Shown: positions 32,761 to 62,349 of the stretch, in pieces
Layout of the letters: each line of letters begins with the position of its first letter
Numbering within the stretch: the first letter of the stretch is position 1
NCBI RefSeq assembly: GCF_000143415.4
Contig: NW_003314323.1
Span: 376,499 to 440,498, forward strand
From: Selaginella moellendorffii
Lineage: Eukaryota; Plantae; Lycopodiophyta
Length of the DNA stretch: 64,000 nt
Reading direction: 5' to 3'
Made by a program: the position numbers and the translations under genes
Notes under the pieces: generated by a model
Told to the model about the DNA's origin: nothing
Database searches by the model: none
What the model saw: only the letters and a program-made list of their open reading frames with translations

Positions 32761-34649
32761 TCAGACAATAAGGTCGCAGTCGAGAGTACGAAACAAGAAT
32801 TCAATCTCTTCGGCACGAACGCTTTCTAACTGAGCAGGCTGCCACTTTGGTTTCTGGAAGACAGTATTATAAGCTCAACGGTGAGAAGAGAGTAAATTTA
32901 CCTGGTCCTTGTCTACTAGAACAGCTCGAACTCCTTCAAAGAAGTCATCTCGAACGGCAATTCGAAGAGCCATACGATACTCCGCTTTCATTACGTCCTC
33001 AATCTACCATAATTTCACGAACATTAGATAACGAAAAAAACAAAGCGCAAGCATACCTGTGCGGATGGATTCAAAACCACTGAGGAGAAATGCTTGTGAG
33101 TGGCTTCCAGGCTGAATGGTGCGGCCTTTTGAATCCCCGCGAGAGCAGCTTTTGCCCACCCGGCAACTGGAAGAAACAACGTAAAAAAGCTCAGAACAAT
33201 GCTAAACTTCTAGACCTTTCGCATCCGAAGAGTGTTGCTCTTTCTCCAAAGCCTTTATTGATTCGGAGACCGATTTATCTGGACCGAAAGCTGAGGATAT
33301 GCGAGGCAACAGCGTCTTGAGCTGGGCAGGAGCTTCAGGTTTACCGCCGAAAACTTTGAGGGCATCTTCCACTGCTTCAGAAGCATTGGACCTTATAGAA
33401 TCAACGTTAACATAGAACCATCCAAAAAGTGAGAAGCTTCTTACAAGTCCTTCGCCAGGAGAGATTCCTTCAACGATGACAAGTTCTCCGAAGGCACGAA
33501 ATGCGTTCCCAGTCCCACAAAGAGAGCATCAGCAGGTTCATTGACTCGCGCACCGGATAAACCGAGATAAGTTCCTGCAATCTCAAGCTATTTCACATCC
33601 ACAAGGAAAACAAAAAGACAAACAATCTTTCTACGAAACTCACCTACAGCTCCATTTGCAGGAGTTCGAGCTGCTATATATGCAAAACCAACGTCTGGAA
33701 ACAAGCCGATTCCATTCTCAGGCATGGCAAGAACCGTCCTCTGATCACAAAACAAACGCAAAGCTTAGCTTCGAAACGAGCCAAGGTAAAACGCCACAGA
33801 CCTCGGTAATCACGCGATACTTGCCATGGCCCGACAAGCCGATGCCAAAACCCATGGTTATCCCGTCCATCAACGAGATGTAAGGTTTTTGGTAGCGAGC
33901 AATCGTGCAGATTAAGCTGTACTCAGCTGAGAACACCTACATTAGAAAACAACGAGATTTGTCAGCCTCAGAAGTTGATAGTGCATGCATTAGACAAATA
34001 GGAATGGAAAAGAAGAAAAAAAAAGAAAGAAAGGAAACAATGCAACCTTGACAGCCAGTTTATGCATCCCAAATAACTTGCAGCCAGTGGTGGTCATCCA
34101 CTTTACATCTCCTCCTGCATTTACTCTTGTCAAGAAAACAAAATTTAAGCTCTAGACTAGACATGGTGCACGAAAAGCTTTTCCTATGGAAGTCTTTCAA
34201 AGCAGGCAGCCTGAGAGACACCCTTGAAATTCAGACCTGTTGCAAGAGAGGTGAATGGATGTCATCTTTTAGAGTCGCTGCGAGCCACTTCACATCCATT
34301 CCTGCATGAGGATTAAGTAGTGAAACAGGCAAAAACGAATTCCCTCGTCTAAAGTTCTAACTGAGAAATAAATTTGATCAGGACTTTACCTGCGGAGAAT
34401 GCGCGCGACGAGCTGCTTTCCACAAGAACGGCCTTCACAGCGGGATTCGCTGCCCATTCGTCAAGATAGTTCTTATACGCCACATCCATGTCTGATCAAG
34501 AGATTTCGATGAGAGAGCTGGAGAATGTAGCTCATAAAAACCCAAGAAATTTCTGGAGTACCTAGATTCATCGCGTTGAGAGCCTTGGGCCGATCAAGCG
34601 TGAGCACAGCCAGGCCATTCGGCGAGACGCTCCCTCGAACGAACTCCAT
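32761..34649 (-). CDS. 3-hydroxyisobutyryl-CoA hydrolase-like protein (crotonase family), multi-exon
   Basis: Manual exons give [42 protein letters not shown]...[62 protein letters not shown] and KPKWQP...LIV*. Confidence 0.92.
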
Positions 34650-34751: not shown

Positions 34752-36806
34752 ATGGATTTTGCCGCCGTGGAGCGGCTCATCAGATGCGAGCCACTCCCGC
34801 GAGCCCGGGACATCGTCCAGTCCGTACAGAGAAAGAGCCCTACTTCTGGCACATACCTGGCCAATCTCCTGGTCCAGCGGTACGGCCGATGCGGCGACAT
34901 CGATCAGGCTTTGAAGATCTTCCACTCGATCGAGGCCAAGGACTCCTTCTCATGGAATCTGATGCTAGCGGCGTATGCCCAGAATGGGAGACTCGAGGAG
35001 TCCGAGACCTTCTTCTCGGCAATGCCACACAAGGATCTAGTTTCGTGGACGACGATGCTATCGGCCTACTCAAGCGATGGCAAGCTCGACGATGCGCGGT
35101 GGATCTTCGATCAGATGCCACACAGAAGCATCGCGTCGTGGAACGCGATGCTTACTGCGTATGCCGCGTCGGGGCATCTGGAGGGTGTTAAGTTGTTCTT
35201 TGATTCCATGCAGAAGACCAACATGGTTTCGTGGATCACGCTTCTCAACGCGTACACGAAGCTGGGATCTTTCGATGAAGCTAGAGATATCTTCAACTCC
35301 ATGCCCGATCGGAGCCTGGCCGCCTGGAACTCGATCCTCACGGCTGCTGCTCACAAGGGGGAATTTGCTGATGCCGAGGAGATTTTTCTAAGACTGCTGC
35401 CATGCCGGGACATCAGGTCATGGAACTCGATGCTCGGAGCTGTAGCGAAATCACAAAGTATTGCAAGAACACAGGACTTTTTTCATAGCTCAATGCCGGA
35501 GATGAATATAATGTCATGGACTACAATGCTCGCGGCATTGGCCAACAATGGGGATTTCGGTAAGGCTAGCGCTTTTCTTAACTCCATGCCCGTCTCAAAC
35601 ATCGTCTCTTGGAACTCCCTTCTTTGCGCTTCCACAAAAGCTGGAGACTACGTAGGATCAAGTAGAATATTCGATGCAATGCCAGAGCACCACCTTCCCT
35701 CGTGCAATGCGGTACTCGAAGCATATTCCCAGCTCGGGTATCCTCATCGTGTTAGACTCTTATTTGATTCTATGCCCGAGCGCGATATGGCGACGTGGAC
35801 AATAGTATTAACGGCATATTCTCAGCTACGGCATCTTGCCTTGGTAGAAGATGTCTTTAACAATATGCCTTTTCACGACCTTTTTTCGTGGACAGCTATG
35901 CTCTCAGCATATTCACTTAACGGGAATCTTTCAAAGTGCGAGAAGTTGTTTCTCTCCATGAAAAACGTTGACTTTGTTTGTGTGAATGCTATGGTCACTG
36001 CTTATGCCCGAAACGGACATCTTGAAGAGTGCAAGTCTCTCTTTGATAAAACATCATCATCGAACCTTGTGCTACGGAATTCGATGCTATCAGCCTTTTG
36101 CAAAGCTGGTTATATCAACGATGCAAAAACTTTGTTTGACTCAATGCCAGAGAGAGACTTGGTTTCCTGGAATTCCATCCTTGATGTGTATTGTGAAAAT
36201 GGGGATTTGGAGGAAACAAAGTTCTTGTTTGACCTCATGCCCGAGAAATCAATTGTCTCGTTCAACATCATGTTAGCGGCCTATAGCCAGGGTCAACAGG
36301 TGGATTTGGCGAGGACGTTTTTTGAAACAATGCCAGAATGGGATCTTGTGTCTTGGAGCACAATGCTTGCAATGAACACACACAATGGGCGCTTTTCTGA
36401 GACAATCAAGTGTTTTGGATCCATGGCACTTGAAGCTGTAGAGGCAGATCTAGTCTCCTTCACATCAGTTCTCCTGGGTTGCAACCATGCAGGAGATCTC
36501 AAAACAGGGCTCTTGATATTTTTATCCATGGGATTTGATTATGGTATAGAGAATCCGACTAAGCAGCAGTATGGTTGTGTTATTGACTTGGTGGCAAGAG
36601 CTGGGTATTTGGAAGTAGCCGAGAGTTTGATTCTTAGCATGCCTTTTGTTGCTGAAGTTTCAGATTGGATGTGTTTAATCTCGGCTTGTTGCAACCATAA
36701 TCAAGGTTTTGAGGTTGGTCGTAGGGCTTACAATAAAGCAGCAGCACTGAATACAAAGGCATCTGGGTCATTTGTGTTGATGTCAAATATTTTCTCGTTA
36801 CAATAA
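34752..36806 (+). CDS. PLS-class PPR protein (E-type, no DYW)
   Basis: 684-aa intronless ORF of short PPR motifs ending QYGCVIDLVARAG and SFVLMSNIF. Confidence 0.93.
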   Translation: MDFAAVERLIRCEPLPRARDIVQSVQRKSPTSGTYLANLLVQRYGRCGDIDQALKIFHSIEAKDSFSWNLMLAAYAQNGRLEESETFFSAMPHKDLVSWTTMLSAYSSDGKLDDARWIFDQMPHRSIASWNAMLTAYAASGHLEGVKLFFDSMQKTNMVSWITLLNAYTKLGSFDEARDIFNSMPDRSLAAWNSILTAAAHKGEFADAEEIFLRLLPCRDIRSWNSMLGAVAKSQSIARTQDFFHSSMPEMNIMSWTTMLAALANNGDFGKASAFLNSMPVSNIVSWNSLLCASTKAGDYVGSSRIFDAMPEHHLPSCNAVLEAYSQLGYPHRVRLLFDSMPERDMATWTIVLTAYSQLRHLALVEDVFNNMPFHDLFSWTAMLSAYSLNGNLSKCEKLFLSMKNVDFVCVNAMVTAYARNGHLEECKSLFDKTSSSNLVLRNSMLSAFCKAGYINDAKTLFDSMPERDLVSWNSILDVYCENGDLEETKFLFDLMPEKSIVSFNIMLAAYSQGQQVDLARTFFETMPEWDLVSWSTMLAMNTHNGRFSETIKCFGSMALEAVEADLVSFTSVLLGCNHAGDLKTGLLIFLSMGFDYGIENPTKQQYGCVIDLVARAGYLEVAESLILSMPFVAEVSDWMCLISACCNHNQGFEVGRRAYNKAAALNTKASGSFVLMSNIFSLQ

Positions 36807-40401: not shown

Positions 40402-42375
40402 TCAAGCTTGTTTCTTGATTTTGTGAGGACTGGCAACCGTCTCAGCTCGCTGGCAGGCAGCCATGGTTTTGACATGCTCAAACTCATCGCCCTACACAAC
40501 ATGATCCATCAGCATTTCTACAGCGTAAGCTACCAAACTTACCTTAATTGCTACGAACACATCATAAAGGCTATCCACCTTTGGTCTTCTGCTTTCAGGA
40601 GCTCGGCTTGTTTGGAATTCATCGAACCTGCAATGCAAAGATCAGATTCCTATACTAAAAGACGCCTGCATTTTTTACTTACATATATAAGTCTTCGTTC
40701 TCGTAGTATGCCACAGCTTCTGGCGATGGAGGGAGTTGTTTGAGGAGTTCCTCATTCTCGTCGAAAAATTGGCCGTAAGTGTCCACTGTTTGTTCGATGA
40801 AACACATAAATTGATAGAATCCGTGGAAGATTGATCATTTCATACCTGCATGCATTTCTATTAGCTCTGAGAAATTGTAGGCGACTTTGGGCGAGACGAA
40901 AAACATGAAGTTCAGAATCTGCATTTAGATGACAGATATCGATTAGTCTTGCTTGTGAGCCAAAATAAACATACCCAGTAATAAAAGAATGCTGCATGCT
41001 GCCCGAAGAATCGATCTCCCCATAGCAAATCTCCTCCAAGAGATTCCATGATTTTTAGATGGTGCATTTCATTCCATTCCTGGCAAACCATCGTAAGTAG
41101 AATAGAAGAGAAACTGAAAAAATGTACCTCTGCAAAATGGACTTTCCTTACATCCGCACCTACACGCCACCTACAAAAATAGTGAAGAAGATCAAGTCGC
41201 CAGCGGAATAACGCAAGCTCGCGAATACTAACCAGCCAAGAGTTTCGTACAAATGCAGCATAGAAATATATCTGTAAAGTTCGAAGTCAAGGATTCTCGG
41301 CCTTCGAAACAAAAGCCTTTAACTCAAGGATACGAAAAGTAAGGCATTCTTGCTACGGTTTCCAGAAACCAGAAGCGTTGAATTGGCCTGCCCTCAAAGA
41401 TTACATCTAGCATCTGCAATCACGAAATAAGATTAGAAATCAAATGTAATCGTACCAGAGAAAAACTGCGAAGACTACAAGCTCGGAAGCATGCATACCC
41501 AACAAAGAGCGTAATACGGACCAAGAATCCACCAGGGAGCCTCAACAGGCGGTCGATTGCGCTCCCTCTCCCAGACGGCGTCTCTGTTCAGTGTTAGCTT
41601 CGCGAGAGCTTTTCTGAGATCCTCTTGCTCCGTGTCAAGCTCCTGCATGAAATACAATGAGCTCTAGCAAGCACTCTCACGCTCACTTACCAGGAGCTCT
41701 TCTTTCAGCACTGGCAATCCATCGTAAAGTTGGAGTATCTTGTCGAATCCTCTGAAAAAGAGAACAAATCCACGTCCCAAGTAAGCAGCACCAACACCAA
41801 GTGGTTTGGAGTCTGAAAAGGCATCGTTAGAACAACCGGAAGCTAAGATTTAGCTACCACCTTCTGAGATTTCAAACTCTCCAAACAGATAGCTTCGTCT
41901 CAGCGCCTGGAAGTATAGAACCAACGTGTGAAGGAGGAGGAAACAATGGACAACGGATATAAACCTTCCATTCTCGACCAAAGTTCTCGAATGCGAGCCT
42001 GAAAAAACTCCCAGGAACACTGGGACCTTGGCGAAGGAACTTTGCTTGGAAGCCATAGTTGAAAGCAATTCTCTTTGGCTTGTGCGAGTGCGTGATAGAT
42101 AGATGCTCCTCGATCGCCTCCAACCTGAGCTCGCGGCTGGATTGCGCAATGGAAGACGGCGAATCATTCCCAACGCTTCCTTGAGCCCTCACAAGCAGCA
42201 ATTGAGCCCTATCGTTGCGGATTTTGGTAGAACCAGGGCAAGCAAGCCGACGGAAACTTACGCGAGCGCTAAAGAAGCTGGAATCGAGGCGCCTTGATCG
42301 CCGAGCTGGAGAATGCAAGAATTTTCGATCGCTGGAGCTTGGATCAGTGCTGGCGGCGCAGCTACACAGCGCCAT
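40402..42375 (-). CDS. PTOX: Plastid terminal oxidase (diiron plastoquinol oxidase), multi-exon, with long N-terminal extension
   Basis: Ser/Arg-rich transit peptide MALCSCAAS. Exons give [57 protein letters not shown]...[12 protein letters not shown] and [13 protein letters not shown]. Confidence 0.93.
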
Positions 42376-42601
42376 TTTCCCAGAAACAAAGACGAGAAGA
42401 ATAACGAGTACTCTAGAGCTCTGATACCTTAGAACCACTAGGAGCACGACGGGTGGCTTCATCTCAGCCGTTGATTCTAGGGCTCTAGAGAATATCTTTT
42501 TCTTTGGCACCAAGGAAGCCCTTTTTACATCAACGGCTGGGTCCTCTTCAAAACCACTTGGTCATATTCCGTGAATTTCCATCGATCGATCCATCGCGAG
42601 A

Positions 42602-43799
42602 ATGCAAAGCGCCAGAGGTGGAATCCTTAGGCTGGTAGTGCGGCGGATCTCTACTCCATCCGCGGCGGCGCCGCTCGCTTCATCGAAGATCGCCGCTGTT
42701 CTCCCAGGCAGGGTTTTTCAGTTGTTCGATCTTGGAGGTGGCGCTAGGGATTACGGATCTGTCGCAGCAGCGGTGAAAAGCGAGGAGGCCGAGGCCGATC
42801 TCCAATTCCAGGAGCAGCCGCCGGAAAAGAAAGATGAGAAGAAGGACGTGGTGGTCTCCGACTACTGGGGAATCCTCCCCAAGAAGCTCGTCGACGAGCA
42901 AGGCAAGCCATGGCCGTGGAATTCCTTCAGGGTAAGCGCGATCGCATTCGTCTTTTTGGAAATTTCTTGCTTCTCACCGAGATTTTCGGCTTCTCTCGCA
43001 GCCGACCGAAGCGTATGCTCCAGATTTGACCATCGATCTCAAGAAGCACCACAATCCCGTGTCGGTGGTCGATAAGCTTGCGTACTGGACTGTTAAGACG
43101 CTGCGTATTCCAACCGATATCTTCTTCCAGGTATGCTCGCATGGCGAAATTTTTTTTTTCTCTTAGTTGATGGTTTGATCTTTGAATCCAAAGAGGAGGT
43201 ACGGATGCCGGGCTATGATGCTGGAGACTGTGGCTGGAGTTCCCGGGATGGTGGGTGGCATGCTCTTGCACTGCAAATCCTTGCGCCGATTCGAGCACAG
43301 TGGGGGATGGATCAAAGCTCTGCTCGAGGAGGCCGAGAACGAGCGGATGCATCTCATGACTTTCATGGAGGTTGTCCAGCCCAAGTGGTACGAGCGGGCG
43401 TTGGTGTTTACGGTCCAGGGGGTGTTCTTCAATGCCTACTTCCTGTGCTACGTGCTTTTCCCTCGATTGGCACACAGGATAGTGGGCTACCTGGAAGAAG
43501 AAGCGATCCATTCCTACACGCAGTACCTCAAGGAGATCGACAAGGGAACCATCCCCAACGTTCCCGCTCCCGCCATCGCGATTGACTACTGGCGCCTTCC
43601 AAAGGATGCAAAGATGCGTGACGTTGTGGAAGTTGTCCGAGCTGATGAGGCGCACCACCGAGACGTAAATCACTTTGCAGCTGTAAGTTTTGTTCTCCTC
43701 TTTGCTTTTTTCTTGGTAACGTGAAGTCTCTTTGTGCAGGATATTCACAAGGCTGGCAAGGAACTGCGCTCGGCCGCTGCTCCTTTGAGCTACCACTGA
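42602..43799 (+). CDS. AOX: Mitochondrial alternative oxidase, 4 exons
   Basis: Presequence [15 protein letters not shown], then [55 protein letters not shown] and terminal APLSYH*. Confidence 0.97.
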
Positions 43800-44555
43800 T
43801 AAGATCCCTGAGCAAGCATGCAGAAGGAATACGAAGAGTTTACAATAAAAAAGAGGAGGTAAATACATACATGCTGCCTTTCTAACAGGTGGCAAATCTA
43901 TGTCTTACTTATAGCAGCAGCTTTCTCTTTCGTTAAACTACGTGAAAGCCAAGAACAGTCGATTCGCGTCGAGGGTCAAAACAAAATAAATCCCTCTGCG
44001 ACGTCGACAAATCTTTGCAATCAATAAGAAGGCTTTTCATGTGGCAAGAAAAACCAGAGGTCACGAAGATTCAAGAGCTCGCGACTTGAGTGGCCTGATC
44101 ACAGTCTGGTCACGACGGAAGGGTGTCCGTGATTCATCTGAAAGCTCAGTTCTTGTTCGGCTCGGCCACAGTGGTGGCTCTTGTGATCTTGTCCTGGCGC
44201 TCTTAAATTAGATTGATCGTCGAGGGGGGCTCAAGAACAGGATCAAACAGAGGGGCACTCTGCGACTTAAGTGAAATCTCAAGGGAGGTTTTTGGCCGGA
44301 AAAAAGGTAGTACCAGACTATACAGTGGGGTGGTGGTACTCGAAAGATTCTCGCTTTTTTTCTCTCGCATTTTGGCTGGGTTCTTCCACTAGCGAGAAAG
44401 AGCTTAGAAGAAAGTCTGTGGCGTTTTGTGGCGCGCATCTCGGAGAGAAGAGCAGAGCTAAACCAGAAACATACATTGTTCTTCCTAGCTAGCTCGAGCG
44501 AAGAACAGGTTTTCGATCGAGTCCCTGCGACTGCGAGAAGTTAACTCTCGGATCC

Positions 44556-49385: not shown

Positions 49386-50252
49386 TCAAGGAGGTGCTGT
49401 AAGTGCCGCTGTTTGGTTGCTACTAACCGGTGGTGGCACTGAAGCTTTGTCCGGGACAGTGGCAGCCGAGGCCTCCGCTTGTTGCTGCTTGAGCTTGTAT
49501 CGCGGGGCGAATCCTCGCTTGGAGTAAGGCGTGGTTTTCACGCACTCGAAGTAGGCCGCCGCGAACTGGGTGATCTCGCAGGATTCACGCGAGTAATTGA
49601 AGAGCTTCTTGGGTTTCACCTGAATCGGCGGAAGAACACACGAAGAGAGTGAAGGGATGGATCCAGATCTTTCGTACCAGAGGTTGCGAGCACCAGCCAT
49701 ACTCTTGCGACGCGGTCATGGGGACTTCGTACTTCTCCGGTGGTGGCATGTCGAGGTCCTGGATTGGGAAGCACGCGCCGAGAAACTTTTGCGCCTCCTC
49801 AAACTCCTGTTTGGTCACTGCAGTCTCGTATGGTAAATGTTTCTCGAGGAAGCCAGCGATGGAAGATACCTTTCCTCGACGACGTGACTTGGGTGGGCTT
49901 CTTGGTGAGCACTTCGGCTGTTTCAAAGTGAAATATTTTGCCAAGCAAGGATCAAACGGATGGAAAAGAGGAAAAAATGCATTTTTTTGCTTGTTTTGGG
50001 CAGTTTTTTTCGGCGTTGTGAGAATGTTGGAAGCGAATGAACGAGGCGAGCAAGCGAACCTGTGAGTGGATTCAGTCGGTACTCGGCAGCTTGCACCTCG
50101 ACGGCCTCGAGCTTCGAATTCATGCTTTTGTAGAGATTGTCGAGAGCTACCATGTCGTCCACGGCTGGGAATCTTTGTGGGCGGTGCTGCTGCCCGCGGG
50201 CTTTAGCTGGGGACGAGGAGGGGGAGGAATGCTGCTGCTTGGAGGAAGCCAT
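49386..50252 (-). CDS. FAM183/CFAP144-like ciliary protein, 3 exons
   Basis: Motifs YRLNP, PPEKYEVPMTASQEYGW..PL and SCEITQFAAAY...PY match the FAM183 pattern as recalled. Confidence 0.75.
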
Positions 50253-50429
50253 GGGAGCAATCGATTGGATGATGATGCACATTCTTTTCCCCTTTAACCC
50301 GATCCGAGTTTTTAGGGCTGCTCCTGGCTTAACCGTCCGAGGTGGAGCGGGAATATGCCATTTTGGTTTGGCGGGATAAGATTTTCGAAACTTTTTATTA
50401 GGCGAGAATCATGCACCGTCTCTAAGGAC

Positions 50430-50730
50430 AGACATTTCGACGAAGCCCAATAAGTCTTCCACGCCATGATCCTGCAGAACCAGCAGCCCTCGCGCACCAA
50501 GCTCGTCTCTGACACTATGGAGAGGAGAAACTCCTCGATGCTAACGCTCTGGCCCCCTGGAGAGCTGCTTCTTGAGGCTGACCATCTCTGCACTCCGGAT
50601 TATGCGTCGGATTTCCACCATAGCAGCGACTTGGAAAGAGGAAGCTAGATTATGGAGTTTAGTTAAACTAGACTACACCAACACAGGAACGTTTGTGCCT
50701 ACTCTCAGGAAGAATGAAGGATCTTTGGTA
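50430..50730 (+). pseudogene. Collapsed remnant of the PPR gene at 53715-55421
   Basis: Collinear blocks GACGAAGCCCAATAAGTCTTCCAC, CCAAGCTCG...GAGAAACTCCTCG, GGATTTCCACCATAGC and GTTAAACTAGACTAC match 54714-55410 with large deletions between them. Confidence 0.85.
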
Positions 50731-53524
50731 AAAGCTGTCTCAAATAAGCAAATTTAAGCCTGTTCACAAACTCAAATGCCTGGCATCACATCAGGTTCAT
50801 CTGGGACTTGATCCTGGTTATGCTAATGTTTGCATATATCCTGACCTGGTGGTTTGTATTCCTACAGTTTTGCTTTGGAATTTTAATAACACAATTTCTT
50901 TTTGTGCATTTGATTTGCATGTGGAAAATAAAGACTTTACAAAGAAACTATTGAAGTTAGTATTCATTTATGCTTGTTATGTTTACCTTGAATTGGAATG
51001 GAGTGGAGATTGTTAAATAGTATATGTATGTTTACTGTTTCGTGTGATTTAATGAAGATTCTTTGAAGTTCTTATGTATTGACTTGATATTTAATTTTTA
51101 ACATGCTTTATTCACATTATTGTACTCAATTTCATAATAACCAGGTTTTATACTATTTTGAAAACCATGATTAATGATTATTACGTAAGAAGGATGTTTA
51201 GACAAATTATGATAAATAAAATATTCACATTTCACATTACTTTCTTTCTAGATATACATTTATAAAATTGCATCTATATTATCTAAATGTCAATCCCAAG
51301 TACAAAGAAAGAAAGATACTAATTTAATAAAACAATCATTTTCTAAATTATCATGATTCTCTTCACTTAATTATATATAAAATTTATGACAAGCAATTAA
51401 TTTTCAGATATTTATACATATTTGATATAATACACTTGATGGGTAATAAAAAATTCAAATGATTACAAAATAAAAAAAATGAAAAAAAATATTTTAATAA
51501 TGAATTCAAAAATATAATAAATTTAATGTTAAATTAAAATATAAATCAATACATTTTAAATTCTAATTCTTGACACTTCATTATTTCTAAAGTTTAAAAT
51601 AACTTGAAACTTGAACTAATAAATATTTCATACAAGTAAATTAAATATATTTTATTACAGTTGTGCTAATCAATACAATAAAACTATAATGACATATTAA
51701 TTAAAAATTATAAATGATATAAATATTTGTAAATATTTTATAATCAATACTTTTATATATTAGACTAAGAAAATTATAAATATTATAATATATCACAAAA
51801 AAATATTTCCTAAACTATTTAATGATAAATGAGACTATTGTCTTTTACATTTTATTTGTGGTATATACATCATTGAAAACAACTTACTTAGATTTATTAA
51901 AATTTAATTAATTAAAATATGTATATATTATGAATAAATAATAATTTAGATTTTGAGTATGGTTTTCAATATTTTTAAAAAGACATAGATATAGTTTTTA
52001 AAATTTTTAATTTAAAATAACTATTTTAAATTATTGATTTTATCAAGTTTTGAAATTACCCAGAAACATTAATATTATTTCCTTAAAAATAAAAATTTAT
52101 AAAATTAAAAGTTTAAAAATTAAATGAGTTTATATCTCATATCACTTGCTATATCTTTGTTAAAATACTCAATTTTTATTATCATTAAATTGATGTCCCT
52201 TAGCTGGAATTTCTAATATATTTTCTTGATATACTTCTTTTGAGACATCTTTAATATTCAGTTCCTTTTATTTATAAATATTTGAATGTTAAAATAGTCT
52301 AGAAAATCTTAAACTTAACTTATTAATAAATATGTAAAGTTTTTTCATATTTCATATGTAACAAAATACATAATTAGAAAGAAAAAATGAATCTTTAGAA
52401 AAATAGAATGAATAAAAGAATGTGAGGATAAATCAATAAAGGTTAATACACTAACAAGTGAAATACTTATAAATATGTAATTATAATGGTTTATTATATA
52501 TTTTATATAGTTATATATTTTTATATATTTAAACTATAGTTTACCTGTATAGTCTGCTTTAGATATTAATGAACTAATTAATAAGTGTTCAACCTTCACA
52601 ATATGTTATTTGATTTTGATATTATGGATTTTTATTTTTTCAACATTTAATATTTTTTAATGTGTTTTTATTTTATGAAAGTGTTTTTTTATTATTTTAT
52701 GTAAAATTAACTTAGTGTTTTTTATTGCACCATATATAAAGTTACACTTTTTATAGTTTTGTTCCCCTGAATAACTTTGATGTTAATTTTTATATTGTAA
52801 TTCTTGATAAAAAATTAAGATTATTTTTTAGTTTTAAGTGAAAAGTTTCATTTAATGTCAGTTAGGTGTTAATTATATTTCTTGAGAAATATACTTTAGA
52901 CTTTAATTTCTAATTATACAACTTAAAATTTAAAATATTTATTTATTTACCTTGTCTATGTGCAATATTACTTTTGCTAAATGCTTAGAAATACAGCTAG
53001 ATGCTAAATAATTATAGCTCATGTAATATCATCAAATTATTATAAAGTAATTTGATTTTTCTAAATAAATTTATTTAATTTATCAGAGAAAATCTAGCCT
53101 TTTTTAAGAGAGATTAGGAAACTAGGTGTCAAACATAATTTTAATCAACATCTTTCCTCTGAAAGAATGCTCCTTGTCTAAAACAATTAAACAGACTCTT
53201 CAGCTAATTTCTAAAATTGTTTGGAATTAAAATATAGAGATTTCTAGCAAATTTTAGGGTTGGCATCTTCCTCTTTTTCCACTTATAAACTCCCAACTTT
53301 GTTGCGGGTTGCTTGTGAATAACAAGCTTGGGCAGGTCGAGATCTTGTCAGTATCTTCCAAAGCTCCAAAATGTACTTACAGTCACTATGCTTTAAGACC
53401 ACCCATACATTGAGAGCTTTCCAGGCTTCAGAATCTCTGACAATTCCTACATTGCCTCCCAAGTCCCTGGTTAGTCTCAGGCTTCAAAGCAACAAGGGAC
53501 CTACTCAAGCTCATTTAAATGAAT

Positions 53525-53680
53525 GAGTCGAATCTGGACGCCATTGTTTGACCTTTGTAGAGATTGTTTGAGAGCTACCACGTCGTCCACGATTGGGAAT
53601 CTTTGTAGCTGGGGACGAGGAGGCGGAGGAATGGTACCAGTCGATATATGGTTTGGCGGGATAAGACTTTCGAAACGTTT
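53525..53680 (-). pseudogene. Collapsed remnant of FAM183-like exon 1 and its promoter
   Basis: TTGTAGAGATTGT..GAGAGCTACCA.GTCGTCCACG..TGGGAATCTTTGT, AGCTGGGGACGAGGAGG and GGTTTGGCGGGATAAGA.TTTCGAAAC match 50128-50391. Confidence 0.85.
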
Positions 53681-53714
53681 TAGTGCACCGAATATACCTA
53701 CGTGAGGATGAGAA

Positions 53715-55421
53715 ATGGAGAGGGGGAAATGCCTGGAGCTCATCGAGAATTGCAAGGGCCTGGCGATGGCACGGGAGATCCACGCGGGTATTCCAGGTAG
53801 CGCGCTCGCCACTGATGTCTATCTCTCGAACAAGCTGATTGAAATGTTTGGGAAATGCGGCGCCGTGGGTGCCGCGCAGGACATCTTCGAGGCGATGGGC
53901 AGCGGCGGCAGGGATTTGTTCTCGTGGGAGCTCATGCTCCACGCCTGCTCCAGGAATGGATTGCTCCGCCAGGCGCAGGGATTGCTGGACCAGATGCCCC
54001 ATCGGCGTCTCATGTGCTGGAATTCGCTGCTCGGATCGCTGGCTCGCGATCGGAGGCCCCAAGAGGCAGCTCTTCTCTTCTGCACCATGCCGGAATGGGA
54101 CCAGCTCTCCCTGAATTCTATCCTCTCGGCGTATGCCCAGAGTGGGCTTCTTGAGAGATCAAAGCTCTTCTTTGATCGGATGCCCCAGCGCGATGTTGTC
54201 TCGTCCAATGCGATGCTCACTGCCTACATCGTCCGAAACCATCTTGAGGAAGCTACCGCATTCTACGATGCTATGCCCGAAAGAACTCTAGTCTCCTCGA
54301 CTGCTGTTCTTCAGGCGTATGCCCAGGGTGGGCATCTTGAGCAAGCAAAGAGAGTGTTTGAGGAGGTTCCAGAGATGGATGTCGTGTGCTCAACCGCGAT
54401 GCTGGCCATATTCTCCGAGAATGGAATCGTGAGCGAGGCAAGAAGGATCTTCCACTCCATGCCACAGAAAAATCTAGTCTGCTGGAATGCGATGCTCTCC
54501 GCCTACGCTCAAAACGGCCAAATCTCGGAGGCCAGGAGAACTCTTGAATTTGACATGCCACAGCACAACTTGGTGTCCTGGAACACGATGCTCGACGCTC
54601 TCGTGCAGCACGGAAAGCTGGAAGAAGCAAAGAGAGTGTTCGAGACAATGCCGGCGAGAAGCATCATCTCCTCGACGTCGATGGTGGCGGCGTATGCCCT
54701 GGAAGGGCATATCGACGAAGCCCAGCAAGTCTTCCACACCATGCCCGAATGGGACGTGATATCCTTAAACACCATGATCGCGGGCTTCTCGCAGAACAAG
54801 CAGCTCTCGCGTGCCAAGCTCGCCTTCGACACCATGGACGAGAGAAACTCCTCGTCCTGGGACGCCATGCTAGCTGCGTACGCTCAAAACGGGCATGCCG
54901 GGACCGCGGAGATCTTCTTCTCGAGGCTCCCGAGCCTGACCATCTTCTCCTGGAGCGCACTGCTTGCCGGATATGCGCAGGACGGCAAATCCTCCATGGA
55001 AGCTCTCCTCCAGGCCTTCCATTCCGCGAGCCTTGTCATCGACATGCCCGATCCGACTTGCGTGGTTCTGGTTCTCACGGCGTGCAGCCGCACGGGCCAA
55101 GTTAGCCTGTGTCGGAGCTGGTTTGCTTCTGCGAGCTTGGATTTCCACCATAGCTCCACCCTGCAACACTATTGCTGCATGGTAGACGTGCTGGGGCGAT
55201 CGGGGCGTTTGGAGGACGCGGAGGAGCTCGTCAAAGCCATGCCGTTCGTTCCTGATGCTCTAGCATGGACTACGCTACTTGGAGCTTGTAAATACCACAA
55301 GGATTTGGAAAGAGGGAGCCGGATTTTGGAGAGCGTGGTTAAACTAGACTACGCCAACGCAGGAGCGTTTGTGACACTGGCCAACATCTTCACTCTGAGG
55401 AAGAACGAACGATCAAAATAG
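53715..55421 (+). CDS. PLS-class PPR protein (E-type, no DYW)
   Basis: 568-aa intronless ORF ending HYCCMVDVLGRSG, WTTLLGACKYH and FVTLANIF. Confidence 0.94.
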   Translation: MERGKCLELIENCKGLAMAREIHAGIPGSALATDVYLSNKLIEMFGKCGAVGAAQDIFEAMGSGGRDLFSWELMLHACSRNGLLRQAQGLLDQMPHRRLMCWNSLLGSLARDRRPQEAALLFCTMPEWDQLSLNSILSAYAQSGLLERSKLFFDRMPQRDVVSSNAMLTAYIVRNHLEEATAFYDAMPERTLVSSTAVLQAYAQGGHLEQAKRVFEEVPEMDVVCSTAMLAIFSENGIVSEARRIFHSMPQKNLVCWNAMLSAYAQNGQISEARRTLEFDMPQHNLVSWNTMLDALVQHGKLEEAKRVFETMPARSIISSTSMVAAYALEGHIDEAQQVFHTMPEWDVISLNTMIAGFSQNKQLSRAKLAFDTMDERNSSSWDAMLAAYAQNGHAGTAEIFFSRLPSLTIFSWSALLAGYAQDGKSSMEALLQAFHSASLVIDMPDPTCVVLVLTACSRTGQVSLCRSWFASASLDFHHSSTLQHYCCMVDVLGRSGRLEDAEELVKAMPFVPDALAWTTLLGACKYHKDLERGSRILESVVKLDYANAGAFVTLANIFTLRKNERSK

Positions 55422-59150: not shown

Positions 59151-60996
59151 GCACAACATAGGCCTTGTTGCATTGGATGTGTGATCTTCTAGCAAAAAGT
59201 CAATAAAAGTCAATAAAGGTCAATTGACATCCATTGACTAATAAAGTGTAAGAATGAGGTTCTCAAGCTCAAGAAGCAACACAGAAGGTAGGAGTGCTAG
59301 CAATGCTATACCAACATATGTACTTGGGCAAGAATGTTATATTTGCCACCATTGTCTCAATCAGGTTTATATCTCTCCTTTTGCAGGGATGTATATTGCC
59401 CTCAACTCAACTTTATCATATGACTATCCTAGTCCACTAAGATCACATTGTTCCTACAATCTTTTATGGGGCTAGATTCCAAGCTTTTTGGGCTTTGAAA
59501 CATTTTTATTATTATTTTGTCGTGAATGTGATTGTGGGTATTAAAAGTTATTTGTCAAAAAATCCTTTTAGATATTTTTTCCTTACGATCACAATGGCAG
59601 AAGATTGGTATTGTTGATTTTTTTTTCAATCCCTTTTGTTCAATAGTAAACTACTCTTAGTATTTGTATTTAACTAGATAAATATAAAGTAGGAACTCCT
59701 ATGTGTTTTTTGTTGAGCATATTCTATTTGACTCTTAGTTTTATTTTACTCTCTCTTACATTTGCTTGACAAGAACTTTTACAATATTGAGTGTAGTTTT
59801 TTAATATTTGTTAAATGATAGTTTACCACCAAAACACCTTTGCTATCATGCCCTATGTATTGGTTCTATTCGATCCTAATAGCTATTTATGGAAAGTGTC
59901 TAGATCTACTAGTTAGGCATATTTATGAAACTGTATTAAATTATTGTGATTTTTAATATCATATACTGGTGATTGTGAGCAATGTGTTTATAAAGTTATT
60001 TGGTCAAATAATAATCAACCCCAAAGTGGTTAATAGTGAAATTAGTCTATTTGCATGTAGTAGCGTTGTAGTAAGTTTGACTAAATTCTTTAAAATGATT
60101 CATTATACTAAATTTATGTTGATATTTTGGTTCTTTAAGTTTATTTGTTTGCTATAAGTTATTGGTGAATTCATTGGTACTTGGTGGATGGAGAAAATGT
60201 ATGATTGAGATATTAACATTGTGTTAGTGGAAATAACATTATTACAATGAGTGATGAGAAGTTCTCTTAAAAGGTTGATTTTTTATGTTATTTTTATTGT
60301 TAGTGTTTTGGCTTCATGTTAAATATTGAAGGTGATTGAAGAAAAGTATTAGTGTAATATAAATATCCAAAAAAATTATCTCTATAATCAAGTTTTGGGT
60401 ATTTATCTTCATATTTTACGAATATTGATGTTTGCATTGTTAAATTAAGAGTCAGTCATTCCTTTTTTAAGATGGAAAATTTTCCACAATTTTTCTTGGG
60501 TTTTTTCAATGTCTAGTCTATTAATCATTTTGCCCAAAAACCATTTTATTATCAAAAACCATAACAAACTAGTGAAGGGGTTGAAATTAACTTCAGTTAG
60601 TTTAGATCTTAGTAAGTAATTTGCACAATACGGCTAAAAGGGGATGCTGACTTTTGGGGCTAAGACAATTAAGTTGGATAGAGTCTAGAGTTGGCATGGA
60701 AATGTGGCTATTACGCTTTTCTAGAAAGGTGAACCTTATGCTTTTTTTAAAAAACTATCATATTTAGTGGCATATTACACTGTGGATTTTATTAGATTTT
60801 ATAAAAGTAGTGAGCTCTCATTCATATTGAGTTAACCATTAGTTTTGACTGAGTATTGATAATTCATAGCTAGCTTATTGAGCTCTTTAATTATGCTATT
60901 AGCTAGACATGTTGATGGGATTATTGCTGTATAATTAGATTTAAGTAGTCATTTTATTTATACTTATCCATATTCCTATATGTTGTACCTAGAATG

Positions 60997-61620
60997 TGTA
61001 AGCTCCTAAATTTGGAATTCATATTTAAACCCAAGGATATTTAACCCTAAATATCCCAATATCATTAATTAGTTAGAAAAAAAATGTGCACTCTTGTTTA
61101 TAAGCCTTTTCCCTATATATTTGGATTCTCATTCTCTTTAATTATTTATAATCTACTATGCTTCCTTACAAATTCATGCTCTCGTGAATAAAAGTTTAGA
61201 GCCGTAACCCTTTTGAAAGCTTTGCTCTCTTGACACCCTACCCTTAAGTTGAGCCCAGCTAGAGGAAATTGAATTGTTAGATGTGAATCTTAATATATAG
61301 TATAATTCTCTTAACCAACCAATAAAATTATATTTGAGACCCCCTTTAATACTAAATGTAAAATCCTAAATTTAGACTTTCCAGGAGAGTATTATTCAAA
61401 CCCAAGGATGAAATATTTATAAGCAACCAAAGAAAATGACTCAAGAAACGATATATAAAGATGATTTAAATGACTTCTTAGAAAGTCTAAATTCAAAAGT
61501 TTACAATATCCTAATACTCTTAATCAATTGAAAAAATGGGTGCACTCTTGTTCATAAACATTTTTTCTTTACATTTAAACCTTTATGGATCATTTTTCAA
61601 ATTATTTTTGGTGATTTATA
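60997..61620 (-). mobile_element. Old, AT-drifted Cassandra-type TRIM with an opposite-orientation deleted solo LTR inserted in one LTR
   Basis: Collinear with 15042-15470: LTRs ~60997-61150 and ~61357-61620, internal CTCTCTTGACACCCTACCC conserved, decayed PBS. The insert at 61418-61505 is flanked by ATATT/ATATC. Confidence 0.8.
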
Positions 61621-62349
61621 AAGTGTTTCTTTCCATTAGACAAATACATGCCATAATAATGTAAGTTTAGTGTTTGGGTTTTATGAAGATAAATTGAAAA
61701 ATGGTTTTTTAGCACTTTGTAACTAATGATTGCTTGTAAATTTTGTTAAAGGTTATTTATACTTGTTTCACTCGATGATGATTTAGTAATGATAAGCTTA
61801 TTTACCGAATAGTATTGAGGAGGATCATATTATTTGGCTTCTATAATTTTTCCATGTTAACATATCAATTTCACCTCTCTTAGTATTGTTTAGTTGTGTT
61901 TAGTCAATAGTGTTAGATTGTATTGAATTTTAAATATGGTGAATCATTCCTTGATGACATATTATTTATAGCTGAGTATTGTTAAAAAATTGGTCTCAAA
62001 TACTAGGTAAGGTATGTTCAACTTTAAATTACTAAAAAACAGTAAAAAGTGACTTGCTTTTGTTTTCTTTTAATTTTGTTATGATATTAATGATGTTGAA
62101 GTGATGCCTTAACATTGATATTATTGATGTTAAGATTAGAGTGAGATGAAATGTTTCTTTATAAGCATACTGAAGAAGTTAGATTTTTAATTTGTGGTGA
62201 TATAAATAATTAATGATTAATTGGGCTTATTGGAAATTAACATTTTACTTCACTATAACTATACCTTTTATGTCATTTTGCACAGCCAACATTACCACAA
62301 CGTTTGCATTTCAATGGATTTTCCACCTAGAAGAATCATCCACAAGCCT

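Follow-up and report, generated by a model that had tools for sequence, protein, structure and literature searches.

A PTOX gene on the minus strand and an AOX gene on the plus strand were found to diverge from a common spacer of 226 bp, counted from ATG to ATG, in the genome of Selaginella moellendorffii. The head-to-head pair is real and transcribed and, as far as visible, specific to this species. On the evidence presented here, the pair is probably (about 70%) a lineage-specific and fortuitous arrangement of two ordinary, vertically inherited genes. All positions refer to the window, the stretch of 64,000 nucleotides that was analysed.

The features of the locus are listed in Table 1. Positions 30402-52375 of the window correspond to scaffold GL377627.1 of assembly GCA_000143415.2 with 100% identity across 21,974 bp, and the limits of the finding, 40402 and 43799, are the final bases of the PTOX and AOX stop codons, respectively. 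The two products annotated publicly for this DNA are 446 and 335 amino acids long, and each matches Pfam PF01786. The original prediction had placed the PTOX ATG at 42375 (minus) and the AOX ATG at 42602 (plus) with 226 bp between them, and the gene models and transcripts showed these coordinates to be exact. Both gene identities were likewise as it had given them, based on the Pfam matches and the orthologue sets. It knew of no description of such a linkage, and no paper describing AOX-PTOX linkage was found in a literature search. The second haplotype, represented by scaffold GL377585.1, has kept the head-to-head pair with the same neighbours and a 226-bp spacer without any indel.

Table 1. 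Positions in the window of the PTOX and AOX genes, their coding exons and the elements of the spacer.
Feature	Position	Strand	Basis or remark
PTOX gene, LOC9644228, XP_002984492.2 (= P0177), 446 aa	40335..42384	-	spliced contigs, phases, Pfam, orthologues
PTOX CDS exons 1-6	42375-41965, 41906-41861, 41812-41691, 41642-41499, 41413-41334, 41271-41233	-	
PTOX CDS exons 7-12	41170-41128, 41079-40975, 40918-40846, 40785-40683, 40627-40543, 40491-40402	-	
AOX gene, 335 aa	42531..44151	+	spliced contigs, phases, Pfam, exon-3 identity
AOX CDS, 4 exons	42602-42931, 43002-43130, 43194-43682, 43740-43799	+	
Spacer, presumed site of both core promoters	42376..42601	.	at most 146 bp (42385-42530) uncovered by transcript contigs
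Left arm of perfect 11-nt inverted repeat, CAGCCGTTGAT	42465..42475	.	MYB-type CNGTTR core; unchanged in the other haplotype
Right arm of perfect 11-nt inverted repeat, ATCAACGGCTG	42529..42539	.	unchanged in the other haplotype

The PTOX coding sequence (42375-40402) comprises 12 exons and 1341 nt and the AOX coding sequence (42602-43799) 1008 nt with a third exon of 489 nt, and both are in frame throughout. All 14 introns, 11 in PTOX and three in AOX, are bordered by GT-AG and measure 48-85 nt, and for all 14 the joint was seen in spliced transcript contigs of four runs, each from a different study. Spliced contigs covered both genes in each of these runs, and no contig in the four runs joined PTOX to AOX. 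The outer limits of the PTOX contigs were 40335 and 42384. The AOX contigs had their 5′ ends at 42531, 42537 or 42572, so that the 5′ UTR measures no less than 71 nt; at the other end, the 3′ UTR extended to approximately 44113-44151. The gap free of transcripts is at most 146 bp and possibly smaller, since contigs cannot define transcript ends. In two of the four runs the AOX contig continued past this 3′ limit to at least 44500 (44153-44500 in the window), and thereby came close to the ATG (44556) of a GDSL lipase gene, the next one along. This extension could be read-through or a merging of contigs between adjacent genes. AOX and PTOX were not mentioned in a 2026 stress-atlas preprint, and the supplement of a Selaginella expression atlas contained neither matching gene identifiers nor AOX rows.

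The open reading frame of AOX exon 3 matched PF01786 with an E-value of 3.7e-77 and 259 bits (cut-off 22.7). All four diiron-ligand motifs (E, ExxH, E, ExxH) were present in its translation when aligned with plant AOX, as LETVAG, ENERMH, LEEEAIH and RADEAHH. The AOX was searched by individual exons, with matches restricted to candidates of at most 315 amino acids, and exon 3 displayed 80-87% identity to named AOX1a and AOX2 of angiosperms, ferns and Sphagnum. Because this level of identity holds across all land plants, matches to the exon are not sorted by relatedness. The Arg-rich N-terminus and the orthology suggest a mitochondrial, quinol-oxidising and cyanide-resistant enzyme. The end of AOX exon 1 (42914-42931) reads PWNSFR, compared to KWNCFR in Lotus, Lathyrus, Sphagnum and Acorus, and a second Cys is kept 50 residues downstream of the Ser position, in RRYGCRAMM. 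The Ser occupies what we take to be the site of the regulatory CysI, and if so, the Selaginella AOX may lack the usual activation by pyruvate.

In the PTOX protein the PF01786 domain was found at residues 248-429 (E = 5.5e-22), and a profile search with single PTOX exons returned no Pfam match, these exons being too short. The PTOX-type motifs LETVAR, NEMHH, SELIEMH and DEFEH are located in exons 5, 8, 9 and 12. As many as 247 residues precede the domain; the stretch of residues 90-245 matches no Pfam family, and the extension from about residue 100 to 245 is conserved in bryophytes, ferns, one lycophyte and Closterium. From approximately residue 100 onward the protein is 75-80% identical to proteins of Ceratopteris, Adiantum and Diphasiastrum. 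The identity is about 70-73% to those of Ceratodon and Calypogeia, 57-64% to those of Closterium and Spirogloea, and about 52-54% to chlorophyte proteins, some of which are named plastid terminal oxidase or PTOX1 by their source. Named members of the orthologue set include the PTOX1 of Auxenochlorella and proteins of Chlorella sorokiniana, Raphidocelis and Nannochloropsis that are entitled 'plastid terminal oxidase'. Ten candidate representatives considered for a plant-type PTOX were all algal or without a name. No seed plant was found among the best 120 of 1539 matches. Architecture and match lists thus assign the minus-strand gene to the long 'algal-type' PTOX of non-seed plants. A matching description of a long algal-type PTOX in non-seed plants and algae is given in a passage of PMC8155901 that cites work on Marchantia PTOX (Messant et al. 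[quoted passage not shown] With both gene models fixed, the linked PTOX would accordingly be the little-studied algal-type isoform. Its Ser/Arg-rich N-terminus and orthology are consistent with a plastid location and plastoquinol oxidase activity.

The conserved extension of the PTOX is encoded by exons 1-4 (41499-42080) and has an invariant core of two stretches. The boundary between exon 1 and intron 1 lies at the same point in mosses, Selaginella and one further plant. Several algal-type PTOX genes were noticed in Closterium sp. NIES-65, where P0011/P0153 and P0003/P0154 share contigs and have near-consecutive accessions, which points to a tandem duplication of PTOX there.

Mitochondria and plastids have in AOX and PTOX, respectively, their textbook valves against over-reduction, and the coordination of the two in plants is usually framed as retrograde signalling. 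The original prediction saw in the pair a candidate safety-valve locus for two organelles, in which a shared bidirectional promoter could co-regulate both genes under stress. As a selected locus, kept in Selaginella, the spacer would be a true shared bidirectional promoter that couples the induction of both oxidases under over-reduction. The geometry is in favour of this explanation. The genes are divergent with their ATGs 226 bp apart, the contigs reach 42384 on one side and start at 42531 on the other, and with no more than 146 bp between the known transcript ends the core promoters of the genes necessarily adjoin or overlap each other, so that the pair falls within the definition of a bidirectional gene pair (divergent, starts less than 1 kb apart). 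Also in favour are the transcription of both genes in all four runs examined, the contig depths, which differed between the genes by no more than about 2.6-fold in any run though such depths cannot rank genes, and the equal length of the spacer in the two haplotypes.

The spacing itself, however, is typical of the region. The ten genes around the pair are separated by nine CDS gaps of 102-981 bp with a median of 203 bp, and a gap of 226 bp is therefore ordinary in this gene-dense surrounding. A second divergent pair was noticed, formed by the genes for a 684-aa PPR protein (34752-36806) and for a member of the enoyl-CoA hydratase family (32761-34649), with 102 bp between the CDS starts; tight head-to-head pairs are thus common in this region. 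AT-rich stretches are present at 50001-54000 and 60001-62000 (GC 0.28-0.32, compared to about 0.5 elsewhere in the window). The S. moellendorffii genome reportedly contains about 22,000 genes, and with one to three AOX genes the prior probability that an AOX adjoins a given PTOX gene is approximately 1-3 x 10^-4. A prior as low as this counts for the selected locus, but it is offset by the choice of the pair after the fact among many suggestive neighbours, of which a dense genome is expected to yield many.

The linkage was absent in every other lineage compared. Neither annotation nor tblastn placed an AOX-like sequence closer than 10 kb to the PTOX orthologue in the liverworts Riccia fluitans and Marchantia polymorpha (two assemblies), in the moss Ceratodon purpureus, on a moss-like contig, in the lycophyte Diphasiastrum complanatum or in the alga Closterium. 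The tblastn queries were Selaginella AOX exon 3 and a Sphagnum AOX, and for the first loci also exon 2. Within 10 kb of the orthologue in Adiantum capillus-veneris no gene is annotated, and one further plant PTOX contig contained no AOX exon in its only about 0.8 kb of upstream sequence. The arrangement is consequently not retained in Riccia, Marchantia, Ceratodon, Diphasiastrum, Adiantum or Closterium. In the large genomes of Diphasiastrum and Adiantum, absence within 10 kb excludes a shared promoter, as distinct from a looser linkage. PTOX exon 1, used as a genomic probe, retrieved moss and other plant pieces and no second Selaginella. According to the original prediction, the idea was to be abandoned if the linkage was absent in relatives and the expression of the two genes uncorrelated. 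The first half of this is what the bryophytes, the fern, the lycophyte and the streptophyte alga displayed, since the linkage was missing in each of them.

Comparison of the haplotypes revealed 10 substitutions in the 226 bp of the spacer (4.4%) versus 55 in 4024 bp (1.37%) of introns, UTRs and downstream DNA (Fisher p = 0.002). The spacer shows no sign of constraint and has diverged about three times faster than introns and flanks, which argues against a selected promoter; its 146-bp core alone diverged by 2.7%, which is indistinguishable from the background. A motif scan of the spacer found no mitochondrial dysfunction motif (MDM), G-box, ACGT core, site II element, W-box or TATA. The absence of MDM, G-box and site II also speaks against the selected locus.

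The perfect 11-nt inverted repeat in the spacer is symmetric and kept in both haplotypes, and was for this reason weighed in favour of a selected promoter. Its MYB-type cores are placed so that one faces each gene, and the AOX contigs that extend furthest in the 5′ direction start within its right arm (42531, 42537). An inverted repeat of this length occurred in 0.2-0.8% of shuffled sequences, and among unshuffled 226-bp chunks taken from the window 2.5% had one. As strong evidence the repeat was rejected, given the frequency of equally long repeats in such ordinary chunks; it is somewhat unusual, and a lead rather than evidence. An extended version of the explanation, in which the CAACGG-containing repeat would let one transcription-factor input drive both AOX and the algal-type PTOX, couple the valves of the two organelles in a hard-wired manner and have been selected across Selaginella, is regarded as improbable.

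The PTOX model of the other haplotype in RefSeq, XP_002973024.2 (459 aa), starts with an ATG that is only 7 nt away from that of AOX and enters the normal frame via an odd, frame-switching N-terminus. In that haplotype the reading frame of PTOX is open across the entire spacer. In the window it is closed by a stop codon at 42564-42562 (position 42564 is an A here and a G in the other haplotype), and an in-frame upstream PTOX ATG is located at 42465. Neither this upstream start nor the ATG of the other haplotype was supported by a transcript contig.

Taken together, the lack of the linkage in all relatives checked, the ordinary spacing and the fast-diverging, motif-poor spacer leave the selected two-organelle locus unlikely. 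That the linkage has been selected, or coordinates two organelles under stress, is conceivable but currently unsupported. Chance adjacency in a compact genome, which the original prediction had entered as a caveat, is the reading favoured by the evidence, among which are the median gap of 203 bp and the non-conservation.

The adjacency might also be an artefact of assembly or annotation, for instance through a scaffold that is chimeric or haplotypes that were wrongly joined. Both haplotypes are contained in this assembly, an older draft, and the odd N-terminus of the RefSeq PTOX model in the other haplotype could point in the same direction. Against this, the gene order of two independent scaffolds agrees for more than 20 kb, a stretch of 6.6 kb that takes in both genes can be aligned between them at 98.2% with no interruption, and transcript contigs match each gene exactly. 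An artefact is highly improbable and was rejected on the unbroken alignment of the haplotypes across both genes. That AOX and PTOX are local duplicates of one oxidase gene which diverged in place, as might be thought from the common PF01786 match and from adjacent genes of one family being usually tandem duplicates, is effectively refuted by their identity of 25% over 158 aa, by wholly different exon structures (12 versus 4) and by the separate sets of close orthologues across land plants, each gene resembling its bryophyte, fern and algal orthologues far more than it resembles the gene beside it, and the original prediction was right in denying a recent tandem duplication.

The evolutionary history of the pair may, in the favoured reading of a fortuitous arrangement, be depicted as follows. 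Two ordinary, vertically inherited nuclear genes, a mitochondrial-type AOX and a long algal-type PTOX, would have come to lie head-to-head in this lineage, most likely through a rearrangement, the genome being so densely packed that 100-250 bp between genes are the rule. Abutting or overlapping promoters make some passive transcriptional coupling plausible. We infer both the sharing of promoters and the chance origin of the pair. With both genes on one 226-bp spacer the locus would be a compact test bed, in which one construct and one set of promoter mutations would read both. Since the pair is confined to the two haplotypes of one species and lacks signs of constraint, its value is that of a curiosity and a cheap natural experiment, not of evidence for a new regulatory principle.

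The pair resembles the bidirectional (head-to-head) gene pairs of plants in being divergent with starts less than 1 kb apart. Such pairs have usually been noted when co-expressed or conserved, whereas the AOX-PTOX pair is not conserved outside the species. The PTOX is similar to the algal-type PTOX in its long conserved N-terminal extension, in a domain that begins only at residue 248 of 446 and in best named relatives that are green-algal; the isoform of Marchantia PTOX orthologous to it is presumably the algal-type one. The AOX shares with the mitochondrial AOX1 and AOX2 of plants the diiron motifs, an exon 3 that is 80-87% identical, the four exons and the Arg-rich N-terminus, and differs from most plant AOX by a Ser in place of the N-terminal regulatory Cys (WNSFR versus WNCFR). 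Unlike in the known AOX1/AOX2 system, the divergent neighbour of the Selaginella AOX is a PTOX.
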